Positions 26,656 through 58,758 of a stretch of 64,000 nt of DNA are shown piece by piece (the stretch's first letter is position 1; each line of letters starts with the position of its first letter). Both the position numbers and the translations under genes were made by a program. The notes under the pieces are model-generated. The model was given only the letters and a program-made list of their open reading frames with translations. It was not told the origin of the DNA and searched no databases. The stretch covers positions 1 to 64,000 of IMG/VR virus record IMGVR_UViG_3300049846_000628; one strand, given 5' to 3'.

Positions 26656-26731
26656 TGTTTTGTTTTGTTGCCTTAGTATTATAAGGGTTGTTGAGTGTTT
26701 AGTCAAGTGTGCCAGTTGAGAAACTGGCAAG

Positions 26732-26807
26732 TCCGGATACTTGGATTTGAACCAAGATTTTTCCACTTCCCAAAAGTGGTGCCATGACCAAGTTAGGCGA
26801 TATCCGG
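26732..26807 (-). tRNA. tRNA-Pro(TGG)
   Basis: Cloverleaf; CCACT-TTTGGGA-AGTGG anticodon arm; GGTTCAAATCC T arm. Confidence 0.9.
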
Positions 26808-27296
26808 GAGTATTAGTTGGTTAGCGTGGACTGCTGAATGACAACAAGCACATAATAGCACACATCCTTTTATTTCGTCAAGTATTCTACTTTGATTCCA
26901 ACAGCGTATATTAGCAAATTTTGGATCTTTTTTTGAAGGGTCTAAATGATGGACATGTAGTGCTGATGAATATTTATCATATCCACAAGAAATACATTTT
27001 CCACCCATAGATTCAATAATAAAATCCCGTTTTTTCTTACCCAATTCAAGAGTATATGTATTATGACATTTACCACATACTCGTTTTTTGTGCCCATAAA
27101 ACTTTTCTGGATTTGTTTCTCCACACATTCCACACTTGTGTGTGGTTTTTGAATTGTTTATAGAAGTATATTTTGATTTTAGATTATATTTTTTACACCA
27201 ATGTCTAATAGATGAAAGAGATTTATTTTCTTGTTTGGAAATATCATTCATGGACATTCCACTTTCAAGCATTTTTTCCAACAATTGTTTATCCAT
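26793..27296 (-). CDS. HNH endonuclease with N-terminal HTH
   Basis: CISCGY...LHVHHLDP...CVLLCACCHSAVH. Confidence 0.88.
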   Translation of the reverse strand: MDKQLLEKMLESGMSMNDISKQENKSLSSIRHWCKKYNLKSKYTSINNSKTTHKCGMCGETNPEKFYGHKKRVCGKCHNTYTLELGKKKRDFIIESMGGKCISCGYDKYSSALHVHHLDPSKKDPKFANIRCWNQSRILDEIKGCVLLCACCHSAVHANQLILPDIA

Positions 27297-27455
27297 AATA
27301 GTTTAGATTAGGTATACTATTATTTATACCAACCTACACTAGTTATTTATTTCGGTGTATAAGCATTATACCCATAATCGGGGCAATCGTCAAGCCTGCT
27401 CCACAAAGTCCCAACCAGATCGGACTTGCTGCAAGTGTCTCTACAATATGGAAAA

Positions 27456-28187
27456 TCATCTTCCTCTCCAGTTTTTATGTTCATAGTAAAAGTATTGGTC
27501 TACTTCATCAAGACCTGATAGAGGGGCACTTATACCCCACTCAGACCACTCTATACAAAACTGCCTGATATCGTGATTATGGACTATATTGTGCCCATAT
27601 ATTCTCACAAAAGAAGACATTGCAAATTGATATCTTTTATTATTGATAGGCATTATTAAGACCCCAATAAATCCATATTGCAATCGTGGAAAAATATATT
27701 AGGCTTCCGATTAAAAGTGTTTTAGTCATCATCTTCATCCTCGTAAGTAGATGGCTCTTCAAATAATTCGTCTATCTTCTGTTGTAAAACTATTCTTTGT
27801 AATTCTTGTAAATCTTCTTCTGTTAAAGATACCATTAGTTTAATGTAATTTTAAGAAAAGGAAGTAGCGGTGGAATAACACCTACAAGTCTTAGAAGTCC
27901 CTCAGCAAATAAAGCAAGAACCACCCAACCGACGCACATACTAATGATAGAAGCATTACGGTTGTGTCGTCGTATTGCTGCATCGATCATCTCCTTAACT
28001 TCACTGCGAGTTACATAATCATCATCATATGGTTCCATCATTTCTCATCTCCAAGAAACTTCGCAAGAGGATCTCTCCTAGTTTTAACAATCTCAACTGC
28101 TCTCTTATAGAACATATTATCAATGTTCCCAGAGGCTTCAAAAGTCTCCTTGATCTTCACCCAATTATCGTAGGTGTGCTGATCCAT
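27456..28187 (-). CDS. Cluster of small hypothetical genes (27456..27683, 27835..28041 and others)
   Basis: ORF track and manual reading. Confidence 0.5.
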
Positions 28188-28300
28188 AGGGTTTAAGTTG
28201 AATACTACTAGTTATGCTAGTGAGTATTTGAAGAAAGTCAAGTTTGTGTTGATACAAAAATATAGATTAAGACAATCTAAATTTTTGTAATTTTTCTAAA

Positions 28301-28387
28301 CGGTAGCGGTTAGATTCGAACTAACGGAGGTGTTACCCTCACTTGTTTTCAAGACAAGCGCAATAAACCGGACTCTGCCACGCTACC
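28301..28387 (-). tRNA. tRNA-Ser(TGA)
   Basis: CTTGT-CTTGAAA-ACAAG; long variable arm. Confidence 0.95.
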
Positions 28388-28455
28388 AGTATTTACGGAA
28401 TGTTAAGGAACTGAAAATATAAATATTTAAAGACCCTTCCGTTATTTATACATCT

Positions 28456-29079
28456 ATGATTGATGTAACTTGTTTAAATTGTAGCACATCTTTTAAGAAA
28501 TTACCATATGAAGTTAAAAGAACAAAAGGTAAAAACTTTTGTTGTATGAATTGCTTTAATGACTATCAAAGAAAAGATAGAATAAATCAAATCAAAGAGT
28601 GTGCTAACTGTGGTAAAAGTTTTCACAAGCGTCCAGCAGAACAAAAGAAAACAAAAAACCATTTTTGTTCTAGAAGTTGTGCTGCGACTTATAATAATAC
28701 CCACAAAACAAATGGAACTAGAGTATCAAAACTCGAAGTATTTTTACAAGAACAGTTAAGTCAAGAATATAATTTTGACTTTCACTTCAATAGAAAAGAT
28801 ACTATTAATTCAGAGTTAGATATTTACATTCCAGAAATTAATTTAGCATTTGAATTGAATGGTATTTTTCATTACGAACCAATTTATGGTGAAGAAAAAT
28901 TAAAGCAAACACAAAATAACGATGAAAGAAAATTTCAAGCGTGTCTGGAAAAAAATATAGAACTTTGTATTATTGATACTTCTTGGATGAAGTATAACAA
29001 AATAGAAAACTTCAAAAAAGTTTTAACTATTATTAAAGATATAATAACCAAAAAGTCCTCAACGGACTTCAAAATCTAA
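28456..29079 (+). CDS. Zn-ribbon plus PD-(D/E)xK (DUF559/Vsr-like) endonuclease
   Basis: Two CxxC...FC repeats; ELDIYIPEINLAFELNGIFHY. Confidence 0.75.
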   Translation: MIDVTCLNCSTSFKKLPYEVKRTKGKNFCCMNCFNDYQRKDRINQIKECANCGKSFHKRPAEQKKTKNHFCSRSCAATYNNTHKTNGTRVSKLEVFLQEQLSQEYNFDFHFNRKDTINSELDIYIPEINLAFELNGIFHYEPIYGEEKLKQTQNNDERKFQACLEKNIELCIIDTSWMKYNKIENFKKVLTIIKDIITKKSSTDFKI

Positions 29080-29316
29080 GCGTCTAACTTTACGTTGGCG
29101 TCTTGCTTCCTGAAAAGCAAGATCTTCATTTGAAAGAACACCAGACTTTGATTTTGTATGATAAGAGTTTAGCATAACAATAGAGGATAAGTCAACTGCT
29201 GAGATCTTATCACCACGAATGGTAGCCATATTAGAGCAACCACAAGTCACAGTTTTACTATGATGCCCCTCTATCTCCCTACCACAGGAGCGGCATCTGA
29301 TTCTTAAGTTTTCCAT
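29059..29316 (-). CDS. Zn-ribbon hypothetical protein
   Basis: CRSC...CGC. Confidence 0.65.
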   Translation of the reverse strand: MENLRIRCRSCGREIEGHHSKTVTCGCSNMATIRGDKISAVDLSSIVMLNSYHTKSKSGVLSNEDLAFQEARRQRKVRRLDFEVR

Positions 29317-29335
29317 TGCATTATAAGTTTAATTT

Positions 29336-29770
29336 TTATTCAGTAAATGAACGTAGCATCCAAACAAACTTGCCGTGAGCCTCATTCAAATCATCAAGAA
29401 GATTAATTGTACCTCTTGACTTTTGATTTTCTGCTTCAGTTGCAGCAGAGTTCAACATAGTAATTACTTTTTTATGATCTTCTAAAAGATCTTTGATCAT
29501 TTCCATTGAGGAAATATTAGTCTTTGCTTCCGAAACCCCAGAAACTTCCAGAACTCTTGAGAGAGAACTAATAGGCTTAACACCTAAAAATCTCATATGT
29601 TCTGATAGCCTATCAATTTCTTCTTGAACTGCAAGATATTGCTCTCCAAACAAATCGTGAATTTGTTTAAAATCTTCACCAACAACATGCCAGTGATAGA
29701 CCCAAGTTTTTTGAAATAATAAAAAGAGAGATGCTTGCGTATCACTCAGAAGTTTATATAGAGTTTCCAT
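29336..29770 (-). CDS. dps: Dps/ferritin-like protein
   Basis: YHWHVVG..F..IH.LF.EQY...IDRLSEHMR. Confidence 0.9.
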   Translation of the reverse strand: METLYKLLSDTQASLFLLFQKTWVYHWHVVGEDFKQIHDLFGEQYLAVQEEIDRLSEHMRFLGVKPISSLSRVLEVSGVSEAKTNISSMEMIKDLLEDHKKVITMLNSAATEAENQKSRGTINLLDDLNEAHGKFVWMLRSFTE

Positions 29771-29799
29771 TATACTTCTTTTTTGAAGTATTTATAAAG

Positions 29800-29871
29800 T
29801 GGGCAATATCGGATTCGAACCAATGACCAACTGCGTGTAAAGCAGCTGCGCTACCGCTGCGCTAATCGCCC
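29800..29871 (-). tRNA. tRNA-Val(TAC)
   Basis: GCTGC-TTTACAC-GCAGT cloverleaf. Confidence 0.95.
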
Positions 29872-30254
29872 AATAAAAGTCAATACTGACTCATTAAATA
29901 TTCTACAGTATTTGCTACATCATTCATAGCATCACGAAGACTTTCTCTTTGACCAGACTCTTGTTTGATAATGGGTCTATGATCGTCAGTAAGAGTCCAA
30001 CGCCATTGATTCATATCCTTACAAAACCAGAGATTAATTTTCATTCTTTGAATATTCCAGTTTAATCCAATTAATTAGGGCATTTAATTCCATCTTTTTT
30101 TCTTCAGTAAAATCAAATTTTTTATTGAAAAGATAAAAATCAAGTGCTTCAAGAGCAACTTCTCTATCGCGTTGGGAAATAAGAGACATAAACCTCCTAA
30201 CTTGCTTCTTATTATAAGGTAAAAGGGGGGTTTCGTCAACCCCCCATATGTATA

Positions 30255-31217
30255 TTAGTTACCGATACGACCAACAGCAATACGTGCTTTGTTGAGAACA
30301 GAACCTGCGAGAGGAACATAACCCAAATCATCAGCAATCATTTGTGCTTTTGTACTCAGTGCATAGTTCAAAGCACCGCGAATATCAGATGTCTTTGCAC
30401 CGTTACCAGTCTTATAAGCAAGAATCCAAGTCAGAGTAGAGATTGGATATGCACCAGCACCAGAAGGATTAGGACTTTCACCAGCAAGATTGCTATCCAG
30501 GGTAATACTGTTCAGAGCAGCAGCACCAGAGGTTGCAGAAGGAAGAACAAACTTACCTGCCTTATTTTGGATTGCTGCTGCCTGGAGTTTGTTTGCTTTT
30601 ACAAATCCAGTATTCACATAACCGATCGCACCAGGAGTGTTACGAATGGTTCCAGAAACACCTTCATTACCTTTAGCACCAATACCAACAGGCCAATTTA
30701 GTGCCTTACCTACACCATAAGTCCAACCACCGAAAGCATCCAGAGAATTAGTGAATGCAAAAGTAGTTCCAGAACCATCAGAACGATGAACAACTTTGAT
30801 TGCACCAGCAGCACAACCAACTTGCTTATAATCTTTGATACGTCCAGCAAAAATATCCACAGTCTGTTTCTGAGTGAGTTTCAGATTACAACCAGGCTTA
30901 TTATAAGCAACAGCAATCGTTCCACCCACCATAGGAATTTGAACGACACCACGCTTTACTTTTGCTGCTTCCGATGCCTTGATAGGTTCATCAGACGCAC
31001 CAAAATCGACGGTCCCAGCGATGAACTGACGAACACCAGCACCAGAACCGACAGATTGGTAATTAACACGATTTCCAGAAAACGCAGCATAGTCTTGGAA
31101 CCATCGTTGATAAATTGGGGCAGGAAATGTAGCACCCGCACCATTCAAAGCAGGTCCAGCAAATGCAGCAGCAGGAGCAGCAACCAGACCAACAGCAATA
31201 AAGTTTTTGAGTTTCAT
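30255..31217 (-). CDS. pstS: Phosphate ABC transporter substrate-binding protein
   Basis: GAGATFPAPIY, YQSVGSGAG, HRSDGSGTT; start MKLKNFI 31217. Confidence 0.96.
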   Translation of the reverse strand: MKLKNFIAVGLVAAPAAAFAGPALNGAGATFPAPIYQRWFQDYAAFSGNRVNYQSVGSGAGVRQFIAGTVDFGASDEPIKASEAAKVKRGVVQIPMVGGTIAVAYNKPGCNLKLTQKQTVDIFAGRIKDYKQVGCAAGAIKVVHRSDGSGTTFAFTNSLDAFGGWTYGVGKALNWPVGIGAKGNEGVSGTIRNTPGAIGYVNTGFVKANKLQAAAIQNKAGKFVLPSATSGAAALNSITLDSNLAGESPNPSGAGAYPISTLTWILAYKTGNGAKTSDIRGALNYALSTKAQMIADDLGYVPLAGSVLNKARIAVGRIGN

Positions 31218-31269
31218 AAAAAGTGAATAACTTCGTGAATAATTGTACTCGAATAAAATATGAAAGTCC

Positions 31270-31286
31270 ACTAAGATTTAGTTAAG
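31270..31286 (-). promoter_or_regulatory. Putative Pho box upstream of pstS
   Basis: CTTAACT and CTTAGTG at 11-bp spacing; second repeat degenerate. Confidence 0.45.
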
Positions 31287-31349
31287 GTTTGGATTTCATA
31301 AAAAAGCACCCCATAAAGAGGTGCTTTCACTCATACTATGAGTTGTTTA

Positions 31350-32864
31350 TCAGAACGTAAACTTGGTCTGAATCACACCACCAAAGTTGGAAGATGTACC
31401 AGCAAATGCCTGGTTGTTAGAGGCATAGAACACTGCAGGAGTTACAGTGATATTATCGGACACCTTATACTTGTAGAATACTTCCCACATCGTTGCATCC
31501 TTATCCAGTCCTTCAGCATTACCAGGTTGACCGATGGCGAAACCAGCGGAATTACCCTTAGCAAACACATCAGACCACTGGAGACCAGCATACCAAGTCT
31601 GAGAATCAGTAGCACCAGCAGGAGTTGCCTGACCTGCTGCATCCAGGCTTACGGTGTTCCAACCATAACCACCACTCACAGAAGGAATAATACCAGACTT
31701 AGAGGGTTGCCAATAAGCACTCAGAGAATATCCATTTGAGGTTTGACCAGCAACAAGAGCACCAGACTTACCACCAACAGCATTGAAGGTACGAACACGG
31801 GTGCCTTCAGTACCATAACGGTAACCGAATGCAATACCATAGTTAGGAGCACGATAACCAATCTGAGCAAGAGTGTTCAGAGCACCAGCTTCATTGAACT
31901 CACCCTTAGTGGAATCAGAACCACTTTGAGCAACATAGTTCACGCCAGCGACGAAACCACCTTTACCTTTTTTGGTAGGTTGTACCCATTGAGCACCAAA
32001 ACCAGAACCAGTTGCCTTGTTATAGACACCAGGAGCACCAGCAAGTTGGAAGAAGTCCAGAATCTCCGACTTATATGCAGTAGGAATCCAAGTCATCTCA
32101 GTGTTACGAACCAGAGCACCAGCAGTCAGAGTCACACCCTTAGCAAGTGCAGGGAACTGATAGTAGAGACGGTCAAGAGTAACTGCGTTTGCAGTGCTCT
32201 CTGCCTTATCCAGTTTGAATAGGGAAGAAGATGAACCGAAAGGTTGACTGGAGAAGTTACCAGAACGCAGACGAGTGCGGAGCAGGTCTTTACCAGTGAA
32301 CGAAGTATCAAGGTTCAGACGGAGATCATAGTTGAATGCAGTGTTACCAACATTCGTGCTAGCAGGATTCTTGGAAGTACCAGGAGTCCAAGCATTATCT
32401 ACGCCACCCAGAACAAAGTTTGCTTCACCACGCAGTTTGGTAGTGGTGGAGAACTGGGTTGCTTCCAGTTGACCAACTTTGGTTTCCAGACTTGCAACCT
32501 TACCTTGAATAACGGTGAGTTCGTCACGGAACTCATTAGCAAGACGCTTGAGTTCATCAGTAACTTCAGTCACACGGTCAAGGCAAGCATTCAGGAGTGC
32601 TGCTGCCTCATAGCGAGTCATTGCCTTACCACCAGCAAAAGTGCCGTTGGGGTAACCAGCAACGCAACCATAACGCTCTACAAGGTTGCTGAGTGCCTGA
32701 TATGCCCAGTCAGTAGGTTGCACATCAGAGAATTGGGTGACGCTTGTAGCCTGTTGTGCAGAATATTGATTGACTGCCGCCATATTAAGGTCTGCAGCAT
32801 TCGCGGCAACAGGAGCAACCATTCCCAGAGCAACAGGTGCGAGCATCAGTTGTTTGAGTTTCAT
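31350..32864 (-). CDS. Cyanobacterial SLH-domain porin (Som/OprB family)
   Basis: Signal peptide; FSDVQPTDWAYQAL SLH; QFSTTTKLRGE; C-terminal KFTF. Confidence 0.93.
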   Translation of the reverse strand: MKLKQLMLAPVALGMVAPVAANAADLNMAAVNQYSAQQATSVTQFSDVQPTDWAYQALSNLVERYGCVAGYPNGTFAGGKAMTRYEAAALLNACLDRVTEVTDELKRLANEFRDELTVIQGKVASLETKVGQLEATQFSTTTKLRGEANFVLGGVDNAWTPGTSKNPASTNVGNTAFNYDLRLNLDTSFTGKDLLRTRLRSGNFSSQPFGSSSSLFKLDKAESTANAVTLDRLYYQFPALAKGVTLTAGALVRNTEMTWIPTAYKSEILDFFQLAGAPGVYNKATGSGFGAQWVQPTKKGKGGFVAGVNYVAQSGSDSTKGEFNEAGALNTLAQIGYRAPNYGIAFGYRYGTEGTRVRTFNAVGGKSGALVAGQTSNGYSLSAYWQPSKSGIIPSVSGGYGWNTVSLDAAGQATPAGATDSQTWYAGLQWSDVFAKGNSAGFAIGQPGNAEGLDKDATMWEVFYKYKVSDNITVTPAVFYASNNQAFAGTSSNFGGVIQTKFTF

Positions 32865-32986
32865 AAAGTTTGTTTTTTTAGTACTAAACGACATACTGAG
32901 TTTCCGTGCAAATAGTTGCGGCACGGTCACATCAGGAGTCTATCTTAACATTTTCTTTGGGATCAGTCAAGCTTTTTGGTCTTTTA

Positions 32987-33058
32987 AGCGGAGTATCGGA
33001 TTCGAACCGACGACATCTAACTTGGAAGGATAGCGTTCTACCACTGAACTAACTCCGC
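32987..33058 (-). tRNA. tRNA-Gly(TCC)
   Basis: CTATC-CTTCCAA-GTTAG cloverleaf. Confidence 0.93.
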
Positions 33059-33134
33059 AAAGTGGGAGATTTCTCTCCCAGCACATTCCTTCACACGGAC
33101 ATATGAAGTATAAGACATAATGAATATTATGTCA

Positions 33135-33206
33135 AGCCCCCGACTGGATTTGAACCAGCGACCAACGGTTTACAAAACCGTTGCTCTACCACTGAGCTAC
33201 AAGGGC
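33135..33206 (-). tRNA. tRNA-Thr(TGT)
   Basis: ACGGT-TTTGTAA-ACCGT cloverleaf. Confidence 0.95.
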
Positions 33207-33296
33207 GAAACAGGGGAGGCCATCCCCCTGGCCTAAGCGAACTTAGGTCTTAGTTGGAAGGAGAGCTCTTGGACGGAACCGCAGGATCACTTCCAA

Positions 33297-33368
33297 CTCC
33301 ACAACCTGGATTCGAACCAGGGACCAAATGATTAACAGTCATCTGCGCTACCGCTGCGCCATTGTGGA
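33297..33368 (-). tRNA. tRNA-Asn(GTT)
   Basis: GATGA-CTGTTAA-TCATT cloverleaf. Confidence 0.95.
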
Positions 33369-33478
33369 ATGATGGAGTAAGTATAATATATCTCATAAGG
33401 ATATAACAGTGACTTACTCTCTATCACTTTTATATATGGATCATCTTTCTAGGATATCTGCCTAGCGATTACTCCAAG

Positions 33479-33551
33479 CAGGCAAGGAGGGACTCGAACC
33501 CCCAATCGACATCTTAGAAGGATGCTGCATTATCCATTATGCTACTTGCCC
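33479..33551 (-). tRNA. tRNA-Arg(TCT)
   Basis: GCATC-CTTCTAA-GATGT cloverleaf. Confidence 0.95.
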
Positions 33552-43855: not shown

Positions 43856-44033
43856 CTTCTTCTCCTATAAACTCTAATGAGAAAATATTATGGTCTAAGA
43901 TATCTGGATTCAACCATTCACTGAACTCAGATTGAATCGCATGGGCATCTTCAATATTTTCTTCACATAGAGTATGAATCCGATCAATCGCCCAATCATG
44001 AGTTTCCTGAAGCGTCTCTTCCAAAGTTACCAT
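43845..44033 (-). CDS. Hypothetical protein
   Basis: ORF track. Confidence 0.6.
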   Translation of the reverse strand: MVTLEETLQETHDWAIDRIHTLCEENIEDAHAIQSEFSEWLNPDILDHNIFSLEFIGEEDDS

Positions 44034-44445
44034 AATCTTTTCGCATATAGCGTCCTAGAATATTGCTATTGTAGTACGCTGGACTTCCATCGTCAAGAGA
44101 CTCTTTCAACACATTATTTAGGAAAAGCTGTCTTGTTTCTTCATAATTACAATCCCCTTTTGTTTTATGAAGACTTATAATTTCTCTATTGAAAAACTCT
44201 TTACCATATTTTTTAATATCCTCCTTCAACTCAGGGCAAGAACCATAATACTTTTTCCAATCTGATTCTTGCTTTACTTTTCTCTTCTTTCCTGGAGGAG
44301 TTCTAAAAGACCAAAAATACTTTCTACCCCAATATTTACGGTCAGTTTTATTACAAGATATAAGATAAACAAAACCAAAATAATCTTGAATATCAGAAGA
44401 CTCAAAAATTTCCCCATTGAATCTCCAAGGGTTTTCATAACTCAT
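43996..44445 (-). CDS. GIY-YIG (Seg-like) nuclease
   Basis: GFVYLI...KYWGRK...YYGS. Confidence 0.8.
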   Translation of the reverse strand: MSYENPWRFNGEIFESSDIQDYFGFVYLISCNKTDRKYWGRKYFWSFRTPPGKKRKVKQESDWKKYYGSCPELKEDIKKYGKEFFNREIISLHKTKGDCNYEETRQLFLNNVLKESLDDGSPAYYNSNILGRYMRKDYGNFGRDASGNS

Positions 44446-44554: not shown

Positions 44555-46801
44555 TCAGCGACCGAAATTTGGACCAGGATTTGCTTGTGATTTGTTCTTA
44601 TTTTCAACGTTCTTTGCACCTTGTCTCATAACTTGATCACGAGTTTGACCGCTTCTTTCTGCTGCTGCTCCGCCACCAGCACCATAGGTTGTTAATTTAC
44701 CACTATCAGTTCTACTTGCTGGTTTAGCAAATGGTGATGTATAAGAAGGAAGTGGTGCAGTTGGTCTGCTAAAAGGACTTGTATTTTGTGCTCTAGATGC
44801 AGCCGAATTGTTCGGGTTTAAAATACCACGGAACCACTCTCCAGGAGACTCAACAATGCCCTGAACAGTTTCAGAAGACATCTCCATCATTACATAAAGT
44901 GCCTCTTCTAAGGTGTCTACGTGCCCCTGAGATAAGAGATACTCAAGAACAAGATCAAAAGCATCATACTGCTCTTTAACACCTAAAACGTTTTTAGTTC
45001 TTTGCGACATTCTAGCAGTAGCAGCGGGAGAATAAGCACCACCAGAAAGTTTAGACTGTGCTTGTGGTTCTGGTGTTGAGGTTGTAGACTGTGGAGCAGC
45101 AGGTCTTAATGCACGAAGTTCATCAGCCTGCTTCGCCATTACACTTTGACCCGTACCCCTTTGAGTTCCAGCGGGAGTTACATTTTTAGCAAGAGTATTA
45201 GCATACTTTTTACGCCAAATATCTAAACCAGTGTCTCTTACCTTCGCCATTTGAGCAGCATCACCGCTCTTTCTAGCAGATGCTGCAGCCTTCATATATT
45301 CCCTTACCGCAGGTGACTCAGGAGCAGGTTGACGTGGAGGAGCAGGAGGGGCTGGTGGTCTTCTTGAACCTGCACCTGTTCCGCTGCCTCCTGCTGACGG
45401 GACTGGGGGTGCAGGTGGTCTTGAACCTACCTGATTTCCTCTTGGACCAGTTCCTGGTTGTGCGGCATAAGGTGGAAGACCTGGCATAGGGGGTCTTGAA
45501 GTAGATTGGTTTGGATACTCAGTAAATTTTCCTTTTCCAGATGTATCATAAACTACATATCCTCTCTTACCACCTTTAGTAATAGGATAACCTCTTCCAG
45601 GCATTACTTTTTGTAAGTTGCCTTGTCTGTTATAAATTTCAATAGGTTCTACTTTTTCTCTTATTGGGGCTGGTGCTCCTCTTCTTGGTCTTGATGGAGA
45701 TGTTGCTGGTGGTTGTGCTCGTAATTCTTTAGCACGTTTTACATCAACATCTTTTTGAATGTTACTACCAATATTTTTTAAAAATTGTCCTGTTTGTTGA
45801 AGTTCTCCTGGTGTGCCAGTATCTTTTATTCCTGGAGTAGCAGCCGCAACTGAAGCAGCAGTTTTAGACAAATCACCTATACCACCAACTGTAGCGCCAC
45901 CAAGTCTTTGAGTTACGCTTGATTGCCCTGATGCTGCTCGTTTAACATCAATAGCACCACCAATTAATCCACCAACTCCAGTAACTGCTGCAACAGTTGG
46001 AGCAACGCCATATTTCAAAAGACCTTTTGTAACACCTTTTACTCTAGGTCCAGGAGTAAGAGCTCGTGTAACTCTACCTACTGTATCCCTAAGACCAATG
46101 CTAGGCCAACCTTGCTGCCTCTGTGGAGTTCCTGATGGTTGTCTGGATGCTGGAGTAGTAGCAGTTGGTTTTGGTGATGGTGATTGTGTAGGTGCTGATG
46201 GTTTTGCTGCTTGTTGTGCTCTCCCCTTTGATGTAAAACTAGAAAGCCAATCTCCAAAACGTGCAAAAGACCCTTTATCTGCACCTGGAGGTGGAGTTAC
46301 CGATGGTCTTGTAGGTCTTCCACTTGAAACTCCGGGAGCATAAAGAGGATTAGAAGATGGTTTGGGAGATGGTGCAGTAGTTCCTAGTTTTACTGGTGCT
46401 GCTTGAATTATTGATGGTTTTGGTGCTCTCGTTGCTGTTTGAGTTGCTGTTTGAACCGCTTGACGACCTTTAAAAAGATTGCCGAGTCCAGATAAAAATC
46501 CTAATCTTTCTTGAAGTAAATTTTCAACTTGCTCTTCTGTTAGTTCTTCTGCTGATTCATTTAATTGAGTAATAAAAGATTCAACTTCATGAAGTTCTGG
46601 TGTAAGGACATTTTCTAGAAATGATTCATATATTTCATCCCAACTATAATCACTAAGATCATACCCCTCATTTACAAGTTCATTAACACTTTCTGCAACA
46701 GTATCTAACACACTGTTTAAAAATAATTCTATTTCATCAGTATAAACAGAATTATAGGCTTCGTATAAATCACGAATTGTTTCTGATGTAAATGAAGACA
46801 T
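44555..46801 (-). CDS. Large low-complexity Pro/Gly-rich protein (probable virion/internal protein)
   Basis: ORF track; late promoter TATAAA upstream. Confidence 0.6.
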   Translation of the reverse strand: MSSFTSETIRDLYEAYNSVYTDEIELFLNSVLDTVAESVNELVNEGYDLSDYSWDEIYESFLENVLTPELHEVESFITQLNESAEELTEEQVENLLQERLGFLSGLGNLFKGRQAVQTATQTATRAPKPSIIQAAPVKLGTTAPSPKPSSNPLYAPGVSSGRPTRPSVTPPPGADKGSFARFGDWLSSFTSKGRAQQAAKPSAPTQSPSPKPTATTPASRQPSGTPQRQQGWPSIGLRDTVGRVTRALTPGPRVKGVTKGLLKYGVAPTVAAVTGVGGLIGGAIDVKRAASGQSSVTQRLGGATVGGIGDLSKTAASVAAATPGIKDTGTPGELQQTGQFLKNIGSNIQKDVDVKRAKELRAQPPATSPSRPRRGAPAPIREKVEPIEIYNRQGNLQKVMPGRGYPITKGGKRGYVVYDTSGKGKFTEYPNQSTSRPPMPGLPPYAAQPGTGPRGNQVGSRPPAPPVPSAGGSGTGAGSRRPPAPPAPPRQPAPESPAVREYMKAAASARKSGDAAQMAKVRDTGLDIWRKKYANTLAKNVTPAGTQRGTGQSVMAKQADELRALRPAAPQSTTSTPEPQAQSKLSGGAYSPAATARMSQRTKNVLGVKEQYDAFDLVLEYLLSQGHVDTLEEALYVMMEMSSETVQGIVESPGEWFRGILNPNNSAASRAQNTSPFSRPTAPLPSYTSPFAKPASRTDSGKLTTYGAGGGAAAERSGQTRDQVMRQGAKNVENKNKSQANPGPNFGR

Positions 46802-47284: not shown

Positions 47285-47440
47285 TCAGAGACCCTCAGTA
47301 TCTTTCAACCATTCTTTGCAGTAATCGTAATCACCAAACATAAACTCATCACACTCTGCTGCTTCTTTATAAGCATTCAGAATTTCCTGTTCACACCATT
47401 CATCATAGTTTGAATCCTGAGAAAGTATTTTTGGTAACAT
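47285..47440 (-). CDS. Small acidic protein (51 aa, MLPKILSQDSNYDEWCEQE...)
   Basis: Manual translation; its first codons overlap the duplicated nrdB tail. Confidence 0.65.
   Translation of the reverse strand: MLPKILSQDSNYDEWCEQEILNAYKEAAECDEFMFGDYDYCKEWLKDTEGL
47403..47440 (-). pseudogene. nrdB: Orphan copy of the last 12 codons of nrdB (VTKNTFSGFKL*)
   Basis: 33/38 nt identical to 48503..48540. Confidence 0.8.
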
Positions 47441-47892
47441 TAGATTATATTACACCCTGGTTCTAATAATTTATATCTCTTTCCATCATAAGCAACTCCA
47501 GAGTAATAATTTGCAGTATTCAAAACGGAGAATATATTGTATTCTCTTCCATCACCAAATGGCGTTATATCTATCAAGTTTCCATAAGTATTCTTCCAAA
47601 TACTATGATATATTGCACACCCGTAAGTTTCATCATCAACATCTGTGATTAGGTAATAACCACTTAGTTTTTCTCCACCATAAGTGCTTACATAATGATT
47701 TACATTATTGTGACAGTTTGCATCGGAACATAATGGTTTAGATACTACGGGAACTTTTAGCAGAGTACTTGAAAATTTACAATACTCTTGAAGTTTTATT
47801 ACACAATCATCTTCTGGTAGTGATATTCTAAACTTTCTCAATACTCCATCCATTTTTTCTTGGCCCTCTTCTATCGTACTTAATTGCGGCAC
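47440..47892 (-). CDS. Hypothetical protein (150 aa)
   Basis: ORF track. Confidence 0.65.
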   Translation of the reverse strand: MPQLSTIEEGQEKMDGVLRKFRISLPEDDCVIKLQEYCKFSSTLLKVPVVSKPLCSDANCHNNVNHYVSTYGGEKLSGYYLITDVDDETYGCAIYHSIWKNTYGNLIDITPFGDGREYNIFSVLNTANYYSGVAYDGKRYKLLEPGCNII

Positions 47893-48442
47893 TCATAGTA
47901 GCATATGAAATATTTTGAGACTTACAAAACTCTTTTAATGCTCCAATAATAATATACTCTTTATTTTCTGGAGAAACAATTCTCCAAGTTTTAGAGTTTG
48001 GATTATCTTTACCAAATTTTGGTGCTTTATTTTGACTTATTTTATTTCTTGTTTCTTGTGATAATTTAACACCATATCTTGGATTGTTCTTACCAGCAAC
48101 CTTTTCACTTATTCTTTTCTTTGCTTCTTCACTATGTTTTCTTCCGCTAAATCCCTTCGTTCTCTGTCCTCCAGGTTTTCCTTCTCCACCAAGATTTTGA
48201 TTTAACAGAACTCCACCATCACACTCTCTTTTCCAAAGTGCTATATGCTTTATCTCAAGTTCTATTGCTTCTTCTTTGGATAGTCCAGATTTTACAATCC
48301 ACCTTCTTTCTCTTGGAGGCAAAATTTCAGCACCATTTTTTCGGGAATGACTGGAATTAATTCTTCTTGGTCTTCCATAACCAACATAAAAGGGAGAACT
48401 AAAGTCCTCCCTTAAGTAATAATACAGAATATAGTTATTCAT
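47828..48442 (-). CDS. GIY-YIG homing endonuclease with NUMOD3
   Basis: YILYYYLRED..PFYVGYG.PRR; RKHSEEAKKRISE. Confidence 0.9.
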   Translation of the reverse strand: MNNYILYYYLREDFSSPFYVGYGRPRRINSSHSRKNGAEILPPRERRWIVKSGLSKEEAIELEIKHIALWKRECDGGVLLNQNLGGEGKPGGQRTKGFSGRKHSEEAKKRISEKVAGKNNPRYGVKLSQETRNKISQNKAPKFGKDNPNSKTWRIVSPENKEYIIIGALKEFCKSQNISYATMSAAIKYDRRGPRKNGWSIEKV

Positions 48443-48502
48443 TTTAAGACTGAACTTACCTATTACTATTTATATAATACACTATTTCAGTCTTAAAGTC
48501 AA

Positions 48503-49687
48503 TCATAATTGGAATCCAGAAAAAGTATCTTTGGTAACATCTTGCTTAATACCACCAACAATATATGACTGTACCTGCGTTTGCTGTGGTGCCACTTGAA
48601 GTCCCTTAGAACTGATCCAATGTTCGGTCCAGGGAAGTGGATTATTCTTCGCAGGAATATCATAAAGTGGTTTCAGTCCAATTGCCTTCATTCTACGATT
48701 TGCAATCCATTCAACATACTGTTGCAACAATTTGTCGTTCAGACCAATCATCGAACCATCCTTGAACAGATACTCTGCCCAAAGTTTTTCCTGATTTACA
48801 GCATTCTCAAAAGTCTTGTAGACCCACTGTTCTTCTTCTTTAGCAATACGTGCCATCTCAGGATCATCACCCTCTTTCCACTTATTCATAATGTTCTGAG
48901 TGATAACCAGATGCTGGTTCTCATCACGGGCAATTAGTGAGATGATTTTTGCACTTCCTTCCATAAGCTTGAGTTCGCCAAATGCAAAACTACAAGCGAA
49001 GCTGACGTAAAAGCGAATACCTTCAAGAATATTAACGTTTGCAACTGCTCTAAAGAGTTTGCGTTTGAGTTCATACCTTGCTTCTTGTGCGTAGGGTACT
49101 TGTTCTAATGCGTGAACCCACTCATTTGAATTATCATACTGATGAGCACTATTGATAAAGTCGTTGTATGCCTGAGTTACACTCACAGCACGTTCCATAA
49201 TACGATCATCTTTCAGAATAGTATCAAAAATTTCAGATGGGTCTGAATAAACATTTTTGATAATATAGGTGTATGAACGGGAATGGATCATCTCCATAAA
49301 CTCCCATACCTTCATACAAGCTTCCAGTTCGGGAAGGGAACAGTAAGGCGCGAACGCCATACCAGGACCACGACCCTGAACTGAGTCCAGCATCACCTGA
49401 TACTTGAGATTGCTGGTAAAGATGTGTTTTTGCTCTGGGCGTAGCATATGATAATCGCTACGATCTTTTTGAAGAGATACCTCTTCGGGTCTCCAGAAAT
49501 AACCCAATTGCTGTGTTGTTAATTTGTCGAAAATTGGATACTTGTAAGAATCGTATCTCTGTATTCCTAGTGGTTGCCCAAAAAACATTGGTTGCTTTTT
49601 GGTATCTACTTCATTGGAGTTAAAAACGGTCATAGACTCGACCACTTTTTTATCCTCCAAACCTGTTTTAAATCTTACAAGACTCAC
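48503..49687 (-). CDS. nrdB: Ribonucleotide reductase class Ia beta subunit
   Basis: FWRPEE, EMIHSRSY, ILEGIRFY, RDENQH. Confidence 0.97.
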   Translation of the reverse strand: MSLVRFKTGLEDKKVVESMTVFNSNEVDTKKQPMFFGQPLGIQRYDSYKYPIFDKLTTQQLGYFWRPEEVSLQKDRSDYHMLRPEQKHIFTSNLKYQVMLDSVQGRGPGMAFAPYCSLPELEACMKVWEFMEMIHSRSYTYIIKNVYSDPSEIFDTILKDDRIMERAVSVTQAYNDFINSAHQYDNSNEWVHALEQVPYAQEARYELKRKLFRAVANVNILEGIRFYVSFACSFAFGELKLMEGSAKIISLIARDENQHLVITQNIMNKWKEGDDPEMARIAKEEEQWVYKTFENAVNQEKLWAEYLFKDGSMIGLNDKLLQQYVEWIANRRMKAIGLKPLYDIPAKNNPLPWTEHWISSKGLQVAPQQTQVQSYIVGGIKQDVTKDTFSGFQL

Positions 49688-51965
49688 AATCTTCCTCCTC
49701 TGATTCTAGAATTTCGGACATTAAACTTTCAAGCGACTGTTTGGTTTCTTCAACTTCATCAGTCTTAGCATCATAAGTGTTTTGATAGTAGCTGGTTTTC
49801 CAGCCGTACTTATATGTAGTCAAAAGGTCTTGCGCCATTACTGAAGTAGGAACTTCATTATCGGGATAATGCTCTGGATTATAGGACCAGTTTCCAGAAA
49901 TCGCTTGATCAAAGAACTTCTGCATAACAGCGACAATATTAATGTAACCGCGATTGCTAGGCATATCCCAAAGCAACGTATAGTTGTTCTTAAGAGTTTG
50001 ATACTGGGGAACAATTTGCTTAAGTGGACCCTTCTTTGACTTCTTAATGGACAGATATCCGCGTGGTGGTTCGATTCCATTAGTTGCATTTGACACAACG
50101 GAACTGCTCTCCGATGGCATCTGTGCGGACAGTGTTGAGTTTCTAACCCCATACTGCTTAACCTGTACTCTAAGACCTTCCCAATCATATTTCAATTCAT
50201 TTGGAACGATTTCATCCACATCCTTTTTGTATGTATCAATCGGAAGAATCCCTTGACCATACTTGGTGCGATGAGAGTATTCACAAGCACCCTTTTCTTT
50301 AGCAAGGTTAACCGTTGCCTGAATGAGATAGTATTGGAATGCCTCAGTCAGATCATGTACTAGTTTCCAAGCACCAGGATCGTCATAATGCTCCCCGTTC
50401 TTAGCAAGATAGTGAGCAAGACCAATATAACCAATACCAAGAGAACGACGCGCTCTGGTGGCGATTTCCGCCGCTTTGACGGGGTATCCTTGGAAGTCAA
50501 TCAGTTCGTCCAGAGAACGCACTGAAAGGTCACAGAGAGCGTCTAGATCATCAAGAGACTTAAGTTTACCAACATTGATAGCACTCAAGATACAGAGGGC
50601 AATTTCACCCTCAGTATCATCAATATGTTGAATAGGTTTAGTAGGAAGAGTAATCTCTTGGCATAGATTACTCATCTCAACCTTATCAACAAAAGAAGAG
50701 TGAGAGTTGCAGTGATCGATGTTCATAATGTACAAACGACCAGTTTCTGCTCGCTCTTTTAGAAGGTCCAAAAAGAGTTCTTGAGCTCCGATAGTTTTTC
50801 TTGGAATAGACTCATCTCGTTCGTAACTAACATATAAGTCGTCAAATCCATCAGTGCCAAAAGCATCATACAGACCAGGAACGGAGTGAGGAGAGAAGAG
50901 GGAAATTTCTTCGTTGCGGATGAATCGTTCATAGAACAGTTTGCTGATTTGGATACTGTAGTCTAACTTACGAACACGGTTATCTTCGGTTCCTTTGTTA
51001 TTCTTTAATACTAGGATGTCTTCGATTTCTTGGTGCCAGATTGGAAAGTGGACCGTCGCGCTTCCTCCTCGTATACCATTTTGCGTACAGCAACGGACAG
51101 TGCTTTCAAACTTTTTGAGAAACGGTACAACGCCAGTGTGCTGGACTTCCCCACCTCTAATTTTACTGTTGATACCACGGATTCGACCTGCGTTGATACC
51201 GATTCCCGCCCTTTGTGCAACGTATCTACCAATAGCCATATCAGAGCTAAAGATAGAATCGAGGGTGTCATCAACATCAACAAGAACACAACTAGCATAT
51301 TGTCTAAGTGGCGTTCGCACTCCTGCCATGATGGGAGTTGGAATGTTGATTTTGTGCTTGGAGATTGCGTCATAGTACCTCTTAACGTAATCTAGACGGG
51401 TTTCTTTAGGATACTTGGAAAAGATTGTTGCAGCAATCAAAAGGTACATAAACTGTGGCGTTTCATAAAGTGCCCCAGTGCTTCTGTCCTGCACGAGGTA
51501 CTTATCAACGACCTGACGTAGACCTGCATAAGTAAACAGATAGTCACGGCTATGATCAATGAACGACTGAAGTTTATCAAACTCTTCATCAGTATAAAGA
51601 TCAAGAATTTCTGAGTCATAAACACCTCTACCAACACAAAGCTCTACGTGTTGCTTTACTGTTGGGCATTCGTGCATACGACCAAACAACTGCTTACGGA
51701 GAGCAAACAGAAGTAGGCGGGCTGCAACAAATTGATAGTTTGGGTGCTCTAAATCAATCAGGTCAGAAGCAGAACGAATCAGGATCTCCTGAATCTCTGC
51801 AGTTGTAATACCATCATAAAATTGAATACCAGACTGCATCTCTACCTGAGATGTAGATACATTAGCAAGATCTTTACAGGCTTCTTCCACCATAATGTGG
51901 AGTTTATTTAAATCAAGGGGTTCGGTTTTACCATTTCTTTTAACGACTTTCGTTCCGTTGCTCAT
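49668..51965 (-). CDS. nrdA: Ribonucleotide reductase class Ia alpha subunit
   Basis: ATP cone; SNLCQEI; KTSYYQ; C-terminal CESCKI. Confidence 0.98.
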   Translation of the reverse strand: MSNGTKVVKRNGKTEPLDLNKLHIMVEEACKDLANVSTSQVEMQSGIQFYDGITTAEIQEILIRSASDLIDLEHPNYQFVAARLLLFALRKQLFGRMHECPTVKQHVELCVGRGVYDSEILDLYTDEEFDKLQSFIDHSRDYLFTYAGLRQVVDKYLVQDRSTGALYETPQFMYLLIAATIFSKYPKETRLDYVKRYYDAISKHKINIPTPIMAGVRTPLRQYASCVLVDVDDTLDSIFSSDMAIGRYVAQRAGIGINAGRIRGINSKIRGGEVQHTGVVPFLKKFESTVRCCTQNGIRGGSATVHFPIWHQEIEDILVLKNNKGTEDNRVRKLDYSIQISKLFYERFIRNEEISLFSPHSVPGLYDAFGTDGFDDLYVSYERDESIPRKTIGAQELFLDLLKERAETGRLYIMNIDHCNSHSSFVDKVEMSNLCQEITLPTKPIQHIDDTEGEIALCILSAINVGKLKSLDDLDALCDLSVRSLDELIDFQGYPVKAAEIATRARRSLGIGYIGLAHYLAKNGEHYDDPGAWKLVHDLTEAFQYYLIQATVNLAKEKGACEYSHRTKYGQGILPIDTYKKDVDEIVPNELKYDWEGLRVQVKQYGVRNSTLSAQMPSESSSVVSNATNGIEPPRGYLSIKKSKKGPLKQIVPQYQTLKNNYTLLWDMPSNRGYINIVAVMQKFFDQAISGNWSYNPEHYPDNEVPTSVMAQDLLTTYKYGWKTSYYQNTYDAKTDEVEETKQSLESLMSEILESEEEDCESCKI

Positions 51966-58592: not shown

Positions 58593-58608
58593 TTTTATTT
58601 TTATTTAG

Positions 58609-58681
58609 TACCCGTGAGAAGATTCGAACTTCCACTGTATGGATTCTAAGTCCACCCTCTCTACCGTTGGAGTACACGGGC
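58609..58681 (-). tRNA. tRNA-Leu(TAG), short variable arm
   Basis: GTGGA-CTTAGAA-TCCAT; 73 nt. Confidence 0.85.
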
Positions 58682-58685
58682 AAAG

Positions 58686-58758
58686 TGGAGAATAGGAGAC
58701 TCGAACTCCTGACACCCGCCTTGCAAAGGCGATGCTCTACCAACTGAGCTAATTCCCC
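58686..58758 (-). tRNA. tRNA-Ala(TGC)
   Basis: G3.U70 pair; TCGCC-TTTGCAA-GGCGG. Confidence 0.95.

Follow-up and report, generated by a model that had tools for sequence, protein, structure and literature searches.

Free-standing GIY-YIG endonucleases of T4, such as SegF and SegG, spread by intronless homing: the gene sits between conserved genes of a T4-like phage, is present or absent among close relatives, and is accompanied by sequence differences near the presumed target and by import of flanking DNA. The ribonucleotide reductase (RNR) genes of T4-like phages are repeated targets of homing endonucleases, as illustrated by the T4 nrdB intron with I-TevIII, by mobE between nrdA and nrdB, and by the nrdA gene of Aeromonas phage Aeh1, which is split by mobE and stays functional. 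In these RNR cases the catalytic residues are left unchanged, either through splicing or through a split that reassembles. For I-TevI at the thymidylate synthase gene, the target sites appear to coincide with codons of critical residues; there, carriers are presumably immune because the intron splits the site and the protein stays wild type. Independently of mobile elements, E350 in the C-terminal tail of E. coli NrdB is described as essential, and its substitution disrupts radical transfer. The laboratory mutants at this position (Ravichandran et al. 2017) are reported as inactive, Gln probably being among the substitutions tested.

Herein, we describe a cyanophage locus in which a two-gene nuclease cassette lies directly after nrdB and the conserved glutamates of the NrdB tail are recoded to glutamine. 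The window analysed is a stretch of 64,000 nucleotides (positions 1 to 64,000 of IMG/VR record IMGVR_UViG_3300049846_000628), and its relevant features are collected in Table 1. As in the T4 Seg systems, a free-standing GIY-YIG gene with a presence/absence polymorphism is accompanied by imported flanking DNA. Conversely, the distinguishing changes are non-synonymous and fall on conserved functional residues of the target protein, and the unit also carries a second conserved gene and a recoded copy of the 3' end of the target gene. As in the other RNR cases the reductase genes stay intact, here by means of a 38-nt duplication, although it is the beta-tail residues themselves that are altered and the insertion lies at the 3' end of nrdB. 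The nuclease has the modular build of I-TevI (GIY-YIG, then NUMOD3, then a C-terminal binding domain), and the hairpin and late promoter in front of it seem to resemble the T4 control of such genes, but immunity appears to be bought with amino-acid changes.

Table 1 Features of the nrdA–nrdB–cassette region (window coordinates)
Coordinates	Strand	Feature	Observations
49668..51965	-	nrdA, class Ia RNR large subunit (765 aa)	phmmer E = 1e-281 to E. coli R1 and 2e-284 to N. gonorrhoeae alpha; K155 (E. coli K154), KSKKG hairpin (E. coli S647/K648) and YY pathway pair present
48503..49633	-	nrdB, class Ia RNR small subunit (376 aa from ATG 49633; longest ORF starts at GTG 49687)	Pfam PF00268, E = 1.6e-55; E = 1e-121 to E. 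coli R2
48563..48586	-	Codons for E. coli positions 349-356, Q Q T Q V Q S Y	Gln350 = 48581-48583, Gln352 = 48575-48577, Gln354 = 48569-48571, Tyr356 = 48563-48565; C at 48583, 48577 and 48571
48503..48540	-	Copy 1 of a 38-nt duplicated segment (last 12 codons plus stop of nrdB)	33 of 38 nt identical to copy 2
48443..48497	-	Hairpin (12-bp arms at 48486-48497 and 48443-48454) enclosing TATAAATA (48467-48474), ending 1 nt before the GIY-YIG ATG	RNA fold -17 kcal/mol, z = -4.1; 0 of 200 shuffles fold as well
47828..48442	-	Free-standing GIY-YIG homing-endonuclease gene (204 aa): GIY-YIG domain, NUMOD3 and C-terminal DNA-binding region	NUMOD3, E = 1.7e-13; PHROG 314 'homing endonuclease'; dN/dS = 0.11
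47440..47853	-	orf136 (137 aa from ATG 47853; overlaps the GIY-YIG ORF by 26 nt), conserved partner gene of unknown function	Family of about 179 clusters; AlphaFold model pLDDT 90; dN/dS = 0.14
47403..47440	-	Copy 2 of the 38-nt segment, now the 5' end of the downstream gene	
47285..47440	-	51-aa ORF that natively overlaps the end of nrdB	Followed by a terminator-like hairpin and T-run

The NrdB tail reads APQQTQVQSY, in agreement with the original prediction. Alignment of the whole protein to E. coli R2 with phmmer shows no gap in the tail, QVAPQQTQVQSYIVGG lying over QVAPQEVEVSSYLVGQ, and the three Gln residues thus occupy E. coli positions 350, 352 and 354, with the Tyr corresponding to Y356. 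No other acidic residue lies between WTEHW and KQD, so no alternative Glu can be assigned to position 350. The iron ligands (D84, E115, H118, E204, E238 and H241), the radical tyrosine Y122 and W48 (in FWRPEEV) are all conserved, and the alpha-binding tail (SY-IVGG...FSGFQL) aligns without gaps. The previously proposed cyanophage consensus, APQETEVESY, proved correct, as it was found in 65 of 73 distinct cassette-free relatives and in 56 of the 120 best protein hits. The first codon positions are G in 100%, 100% and 97% of the cassette-free relatives, so three C's are far beyond chance. As judged from assembled (Logan) contigs rather than raw reads, an assembly error is ruled out: a 1631-nt contig of sequencing run X1 (depth 277), a 976-nt contig of run X2 from another study (depth 770) and an 874-nt contig of metatranscriptome library X4 from a third study are all identical to the window across the site. 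The RNA-library contig carries C and gives no indication of RNA editing back to G, albeit contigs would miss rare variants. Neither a second nrdB, nor a separate Glu-type tail, nor a recoding tRNA was found in the window, whose nine tRNAs include no Gln or Glu. It should be noted that unique cassette DNA starts directly after the nrdB stop codon (48502), placing the Gln codons 69-81 nt upstream of the stop; the distance of 31-43 nt given in the original prediction measures to the start of the duplicated segment. In cassette-free relatives the downstream 51-aa gene starts 38 nt inside nrdB, so that insertion of a cassette between the two requires this duplication. The flanking 51-aa gene is 98% identical to that of the cassette-free locus L079 whereas nrdB is closest to L001-type loci, so the region is mosaic.

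The original prediction attributed the G-to-C changes at normally invariant Glu codons to escape from the adjacent GIY-YIG endonuclease. The inferred link to the cassette is supported by comparison and passed every comparative test that had been suggested for it. Among 168 distinct nrdB 3' junctions, a Gln at 350, 352 or 354 occurs in 85 of 87 that have orf136 and in 0 of 81 without it (Fisher p = 2e-46). Of 14 phylogenetically independent contrasts on the nrdB tree, 13 point the same way for Q352 and about 10 for Q350, with none opposite. An unbiased DNA scan for the Gln allele returned only NrdB tails, and every one with at least 900 nt of downstream sequence carries the cassette. In cellular genomes, the Gln-tail DNA pattern gave only 13 chance matches in 185,579 species genomes. 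The three changes are not equivalent, however. In orf136-bearing relatives the first codon position is C in 59% (codon 350), 94% (codon 352) and 80% (codon 354), i.e., E352Q and E354Q are near-constant whereas E350Q is facultative and the remaining carriers keep E350. Moreover, the best predictor of a Gln tail is orf136 and not the GIY-YIG gene: GIY-YIG-only junctions never have Gln (0 of 13), while orf136-only junctions all do (3 of 3).

The cassette is mobile together with the end of nrdB. Its presence changes at least 27 times, and Q350 at least 20 times, on a tree of 125 nrdB bodies, while the junction after the nrdB stop is the same in all carriers. Divergence from the closest cassette-free partner matches the control until about -120 nt and then rises to 0.33 per site in -90 to -61 (control 0.14), indicating an imported tract that starts at about -120 to -90 and includes the discriminating positions -81, -75 and -69. 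A second GIY-YIG lineage, which lacks orf136 and sits at the same place, carries other substitutions in the same 18 nt (QETEQETY, QETEIESY); none of its 12 junctions has the consensus, against 65 of 73 cassette-free loci (p = 1e-9). The nuclease looks active. Although the Pfam GIY-YIG models miss the window protein, it aligns over its full length with the proteins of loci L163, L236 and L237, of which L163 and L237 pass PF22945, and Y4, Y7, Y19, G21, G23, R27, E63 and N81 are invariant. The hairpin in front of its start codon encloses TATAAATA, which appears to match the T4-type late promoter consensus, and the same arrangement with different arm sequences is seen in other cassettes. The arrangement with Gln at 350, 352 or 354 in various combinations recurs in distant phages, and in locus L357 the displaced original tail QETEKESY lies next to the recoded QETQKQSY. 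No GenBank phage was found to carry orf136 or a close homologue of the nuclease.

Several lines of evidence suggest that the recoded tail is still needed. Only Gln or Glu is seen at codon 350, no stop or frameshift appears in 73 distinct Gln alleles, and Y356 and the C-terminal binding motif are kept. The dN/dS of nrdB is 0.054 in Q350 carriers and 0.061 in non-carriers, although frequent recombination unlinks the tail from the nrdB body and this measure was down-weighted accordingly. The carrier phage is abundant in two samples (depth 277 and 770), with the cassette at about the same depth as nrdB. Compensation in NrdA, one of the consequences proposed originally, was not found over the contact residues and the C-terminal two-thirds of the protein. 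The E350 partners are present in the window; the KSKKG hairpin is identical in carriers and non-carriers, whereas the K154 region could be read in only one Gln350 carrier. A column-by-column scan of NrdA and NrdB revealed no position associated with Gln350 beyond 350, 352 and 354, with the N-terminal third of NrdA poorly covered in carriers.

Taken together, the three G-to-C changes are best explained as part of a mobile unit comprising the last 90-120 nt of nrdB in recoded form, a late-promoter/hairpin control region, the free-standing GIY-YIG endonuclease, orf136, and the 38-nt duplication that keeps the overlapping downstream gene intact. In this model, for which we estimate a probability of roughly 55%, the unit spreads among related phages by intronless homing. 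In a mixed infection, its nuclease is inferred to cut cassette-free nrdB in or beside the codons Q-E-x-E-x-E-x-Y, a sequence that cannot drift because the protein needs it, and the break is repaired from the cassette-bearing genome, which copies in the cassette and the adjacent nrdB tail. The carrier would be protected by the change of the first base of each Glu codon. This base cannot be changed synonymously; G-to-T gives a stop codon and G-to-A gives Lys, so C, giving the near-isosteric Gln, is the least damaging option. E352Q and E354Q would represent the near-constant immunity changes and E350Q an optional third one, present in this window. We infer that the reductase still works in carriers, probably less well, with Gln350 keeping the hydrogen bonds that Glu350 makes to the alpha subunit. 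The cleavage site and the immunity are likewise inferred, in the absence of cleavage data, and the cut site cannot be derived from sequence; no conserved CNNNG motif of the I-TevI type was recognised in the Glu-type target. As the Gln tail tracks orf136 rather than the GIY-YIG gene, the nuclease-immunity explanation may be incomplete. Residual activity with Gln350 also goes against precedent, as NrdA and NrdB are close relatives of the E. coli enzyme and no compensating change was found in the regions covered.

Alternatively, the Gln tail could have the same origin but Gln350 could inactivate the reductase, the phage living on host-made and salvaged deoxynucleotides while the damaged allele hitch-hikes with the drive of the cassette and is repeatedly placed onto fresh nrdB genes. 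This reading is less likely but retains some support. Apart from the E. coli precedent and the lack of detected compensation, Gln350 never occurs without the cassette, as expected if it is costly, and the cassette was in only 3 of the 80 closest nrdB loci. About 40% of carriers have Glu at 350 while keeping Gln352 and Gln354, and the 350 state switches at least 9 times among carriers, as expected if selection favours restoring Glu whenever immunity allows. Decay of nrdB need not be visible when the tail is unlinked from the body, and T4 nrd mutants appear to be viable. Still, carriers show no relaxation of selection on nrdB, even though the cassette has diverged to a synonymous distance of about 0.5 among carriers, which would be ample time for decay. 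If the enzyme were dispensable, stop codons or Lys (the commoner G-to-A change) should also serve as immunity alleles, but only Gln is seen at 350 and 352. In addition, Gln350 persists in distant phage lineages and the carrier is abundant.

Two further readings, both doubtful, centre on orf136. In the first, the protein repairs or compensates at the protein level, most plausibly by deamidating the recoded Gln residues back to Glu. Besides predicting the Gln tail, orf136 stays with it where the nuclease gene is absent, fused or inverted (loci L234, L303, L326, L355 and L359), and all five closer family members looked up in other phages lie directly after an nrdB with Gln at 350/352/354. It is better conserved than the nuclease gene and under purifying selection. 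C46, H82 and D94 are invariant in 48 sequences; in the predicted structure the Cys starts helix 46-57 and the His and Asp lie on successive strands, an order that may be used by papain-fold deamidases and transglutaminases. The protein is acidic, which is unlike a DNA-binding module, in four lineages it ends in frame with an NrdB C-terminal tail that should dock on NrdA, and distant family members are stand-alone bacterial proteins unrelated to nucleases. However, the confident model matches no solved deamidase, papain-like or other fold (best Foldseek E = 0.14, TM below 0.3), and searches of Pfam, NCBIfam, PHROGs, PDB sequences and the ESM Atlas gave no useful hit, the only leads being weak (T4_MRH at E = 0.003 in 2 of 48 members, and YunG-like at score 0.87-0.89). 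In BFVD, only uncharacterised viral proteins and one GIY-YIG fusion match. Tight physical linkage within one mobile unit can by itself explain the association, repeated fusion of the domain to GIY-YIG domains in one polypeptide fits a nuclease accessory at least as well, and three orf136 junctions have no Gln (L100, L116 and L163). It remains an unlikely possibility that a selfish element recodes essential glutamates so that its own nuclease cannot cut the carrier genome, and also carries an enzyme that restores a wild-type protein from the immune gene after translation.

In the second reading, orf136 is the specificity subunit, or itself the nuclease, recognising the periodic G of the Glu codons, with the GIY-YIG proteins as interchangeable cutting modules or later invaders. 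In line with this notion, the Gln tail follows orf136 across swaps of the GIY-YIG catalytic domain, as two unrelated N-terminal types combine with the same C-terminal region and the same orf136. Fusions of orf136-like and GIY-YIG domains exist, orf136-only junctions still have Gln, and the conserved Cys, His, His and Asp could bind a metal. Conversely, the protein is acidic and small, shows no similarity to any nuclease or DNA-binding fold, has bacterial relatives in non-mobile contexts, and sometimes carries in-frame NrdB tails that this reading leaves unexplained. Finally, a sequencing artefact or a neutral lineage polymorphism is contradicted by the identical contigs of three independent runs, by the dozens of independent metagenome contigs that carry Gln tails, and by the scattering of the trait over the nrdB tree in association with the cassette.

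The locus provides a natural, widespread E350Q (plus E352Q and E354Q) class Ia beta subunit that is closely related to the E. coli enzyme, in which E350 is held to be essential for gating radical transfer. Either E350 is not universally required, or abundant phages carry a dead reductase. With regard to mobile elements, the cassette may show what happens when a homing nuclease targets codons that cannot change silently, the carrier paying with amino-acid changes in the target protein. The element ships a recoded gene end together with a conserved partner gene, which could be a compensator, a specificity factor or something else, and which defines an uncharacterised protein family with a functional link to RNR that can be tested. 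The recurrence in distant phages means that the arrangement is old and successful.

On the minus strand, the codons for the tail of NrdB read CAG CAA ACG CAG GTA CAG TCA TAT (Q Q T Q V Q S Y). The gene is a class Ia nrdB (PF00268, E = 1.6e-55), and its product aligns to E. coli R2 at E = 1e-121 with no gap in the tail. Thus, the three Gln occupy E. coli positions 350, 352 and 354, and the Tyr is Y356, whereas the iron ligands, Y122 and W48 are conserved and no other acidic residue is nearby. The original prediction that Glu350 is replaced by Gln is in this respect correct. The upstream gene is nrdA (E = 1e-281 to E. coli R1). The closest cultured phages are Synechococcus myoviruses, with S-SKS1 at 81% nucleotide identity, and a 211-kb IMG/VR contig is 100% identical across the cassette. 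As judged from assembled contigs, without read data, contigs from two DNA runs of different studies and one from a metatranscriptome library are identical to the window over the site.

Directly after the nrdB stop follow a hairpin, a GIY-YIG/NUMOD3 endonuclease gene, a gene here denoted orf136, and a copy of the last 38 nt of nrdB which forms the start of a 51-aa gene. The 12-bp-stem hairpin (-17 kcal/mol, z = -4.1) ends one base before an ATG, and the arrangement resembles the T4 late-promoter/hairpin control of homing-endonuclease genes. The RNA-library contig of nrdB ends at 48501, and no RNA contig covers 48224-48500. In cassette-free relatives the 51-aa gene starts 38 nt inside nrdB, and the duplication is what allows an insertion between two overlapping genes. 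The right flank resembles that of L079-type phages and the nrdB body that of L001-type phages (L numbers denote individual loci), so the region is mosaic.

Features of the nrdB region and its surroundings (window coordinates)
Feature	Coordinates	Strand	Remarks
NrdB tail codons, QQTQVQSY	48586-48563	-	C at 48583, 48577 and 48571
Hairpin region	48443-48502	-	encloses TATAAATA, immediately before the endonuclease start codon
GIY-YIG/NUMOD3 endonuclease gene	47828-48442		204 aa
orf136	47440-47853	-	137 aa; overlaps the endonuclease gene by 26 nt
Direct duplication of the nrdB / 51-aa-gene overlap	47403-47440 and 48503-48540	-	38 nt, 33 of 38 identical; brackets the cassette
ORF with a YENPW...GFVYLI...RKYWGRKY motif	43996-44445	-	149 aa
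ORF rich in Pro, Ala, Ser and Gly	44555-46801	-	748 aa; low complexity, acidic N- and C-terminal parts; function unknown
Nine tRNA genes	26731-33551 and 58608-58758	-	Pro, Ser, Val, Gly, Thr, Asn, Arg, Leu, Ala; none for Gln or Glu

The 149-aa ORF resembles a family also seen near the cassette in two other loci, L147 and L295, and may be another GIY-YIG-like (Seg-like) gene.

In order to test the association between the Gln tail and the cassette, relatives were fetched by NrdB, by each cassette protein, and by an unbiased DNA pattern for the Gln allele. Of the 80 closest nrdB loci, 77 have Glu and no cassette, while the other 3 have Gln at every Glu and carry the cassette. Among 136 distinct junctions, all 73 cassette-free ones keep Glu at 350 and 352, and 65 of these read APQETEVESY. 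Profile searches for both cassette genes were then performed over all 168 informative distinct junctions. At least one Gln at 350/352/354 was found in 0 of 68 junctions with neither gene, 0 of 13 with the GIY-YIG gene only, 3 of 3 with orf136 only, and 82 of 84 with both genes (Fisher's test for Gln tail against orf136, p = 2e-46). On the nrdB tree, 14 independent contrasts in orf136 presence are matched by Q352 in 13 and by Q350 in about 10, and none goes the other way. The unbiased scan returned 73 distinct Gln alleles, all of them NrdB tails, and every one with at least 900 nt of downstream sequence has the cassette. The same pattern gave only chance matches in 185,579 cellular genomes.

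The distribution of the cassette was subsequently analyzed on a tree of the nrdB body, from which the last 130 nt were excluded. Cassette presence changes at least 27 times and Q350 at least 20 times among 125 sequences. For carriers with a close cassette-free partner, divergence equals the control until about 120 nt before the stop and then rises to 0.33 per site in -90 to -61, against 0.14 in controls. The end of nrdB, including the Gln codons, was therefore imported together with the cassette.

Three nucleotide positions, numbered from the stop, discriminate carriers from non-carriers. At -75 (codon 352), orf136 carriers have C in 94% and cassette-free loci G in 100%; at -69 (codon 354), carriers have C in 80% and A in 12%, as compared to G in 97%; and at -81 (codon 350), carriers have C in 59%, as compared to G in 100%. 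Thirty of 51 cassette-ascertained junctions have Q350, 18 keep E350 with Q352, and 3 keep both Glu residues. As the 350 state moreover switches at least 9 times among carriers, E350Q, the point of the original prediction, is an optional member of the set. A second GIY-YIG lineage (58-78% identical, loci L143-L159), which lacks orf136, sits at the same junction and carries different substitutions in the same 18 nt (QETEQETY, QETEIESY) that are absent from cassette-free loci (p = 1e-9). This is the strongest indirect sign that nucleases at this site target this stretch. The catalytic GIY-YIG domain has been swapped in loci L056, L163, L174, L188, L210, L226 and L230-L232, where two unrelated N-terminal types (MNNYILYYYLRED... 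and MYYVYELIDPR...) are joined to the same C-terminal binding region and the same orf136.

The partner gene orf136 has no match in Pfam, NCBIfam or PDB sequences, whereas a full HMMER search finds about 179 clusters of small proteins. Cys46, His82 and Asp94 are invariant, and His47 and Asn49 nearly so (numbering of the 136-residue translation used as query). In the AlphaFold model, which is confident (pLDDT 90), Cys sits at the start of a helix, and His and Asp lie on the next strands. No solved structure matches the model, and the best viral match is a GIY-YIG fusion protein. Both cassette genes are under purifying selection (dN/dS 0.11 and 0.14).

The orf136 family is tied to nrdB also outside the close relatives. 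All five closer family members looked up in other, distant phages lie directly after nrdB, and the corresponding NrdB tails read QQVELSAY, QQTQITSY, QQSEIQNY, QETQKQSY and QQTEIQSY. The orf136-like proteins of four other phage lineages (loci L236, L237, L353 and L357) end, in frame, with a duplicated NrdB C-terminal tail, and such proteins should dock on NrdA like the beta subunit does. In L357 this is the complete original Glu-type tail from QETEKESY to the end, so that old and recoded versions sit side by side. The domain is fused to a GIY-YIG domain in several proteins, and it stands alone after a Gln-tail nrdB in L234, L303, L326 and L355. In the distant lineages the cassette or orf136 is followed by a glutaredoxin-like gene (CPFC/CPNC motif in L303 and L326, Pfam Glutaredoxin in L236 and L237), and the whole neighbourhood there is an RNR module. 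More distant members lie in unrelated, partly bacterial contexts.

With regard to the reductase, published work calls E350 conserved and essential. The phage NrdA keeps K155 and the KSKKG hairpin; the hairpin is the same in carriers and non-carriers, albeit the K154 region was readable in only one Gln350 carrier. No other column of NrdB, or of the C-terminal two-thirds of NrdA, is tied to Gln350. Still, the tail appears to matter in carriers. Only Gln or Glu occurs at 350, no stop codon or frameshift is seen in the 73 Gln alleles, and Y356 and the C-terminal motif are kept. Moreover, nrdB dN/dS is 0.054 in Q350 carriers against 0.061 in non-carriers, although it should be noted that recombination limits what dN/dS can show, and the carrier phage is abundant in two samples. 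Conversely, Gln350 never occurs without the cassette, and many carriers have restored Glu at 350, both of which indicate that Gln350 is costly.

In summary, the best-supported account is intronless homing with self-immunity through the first bases of the Glu codons, where C (Gln) is the least damaging option; the cleavage site and the immunity are inferred. We judge residual RNR activity more likely than a dead enzyme carried by drive, albeit this is an inference that runs against the E. coli precedent. As the Gln tail follows orf136 rather than the GIY-YIG gene, two further readings stay open, although we regard both as less likely. In one, orf136 is a specificity factor or nuclease; in the other, orf136 acts on the RNR, in the extreme case deamidating the tail glutamines.

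Homing endonucleases in and next to phage RNR genes, and intronless homing with co-conversion, are established. What is new here is immunity apparently bought with amino-acid changes at conserved tail residues including E350, an element-borne recoded gene end, and a conserved partner gene of unknown fold linked to nrdB across distant phages.
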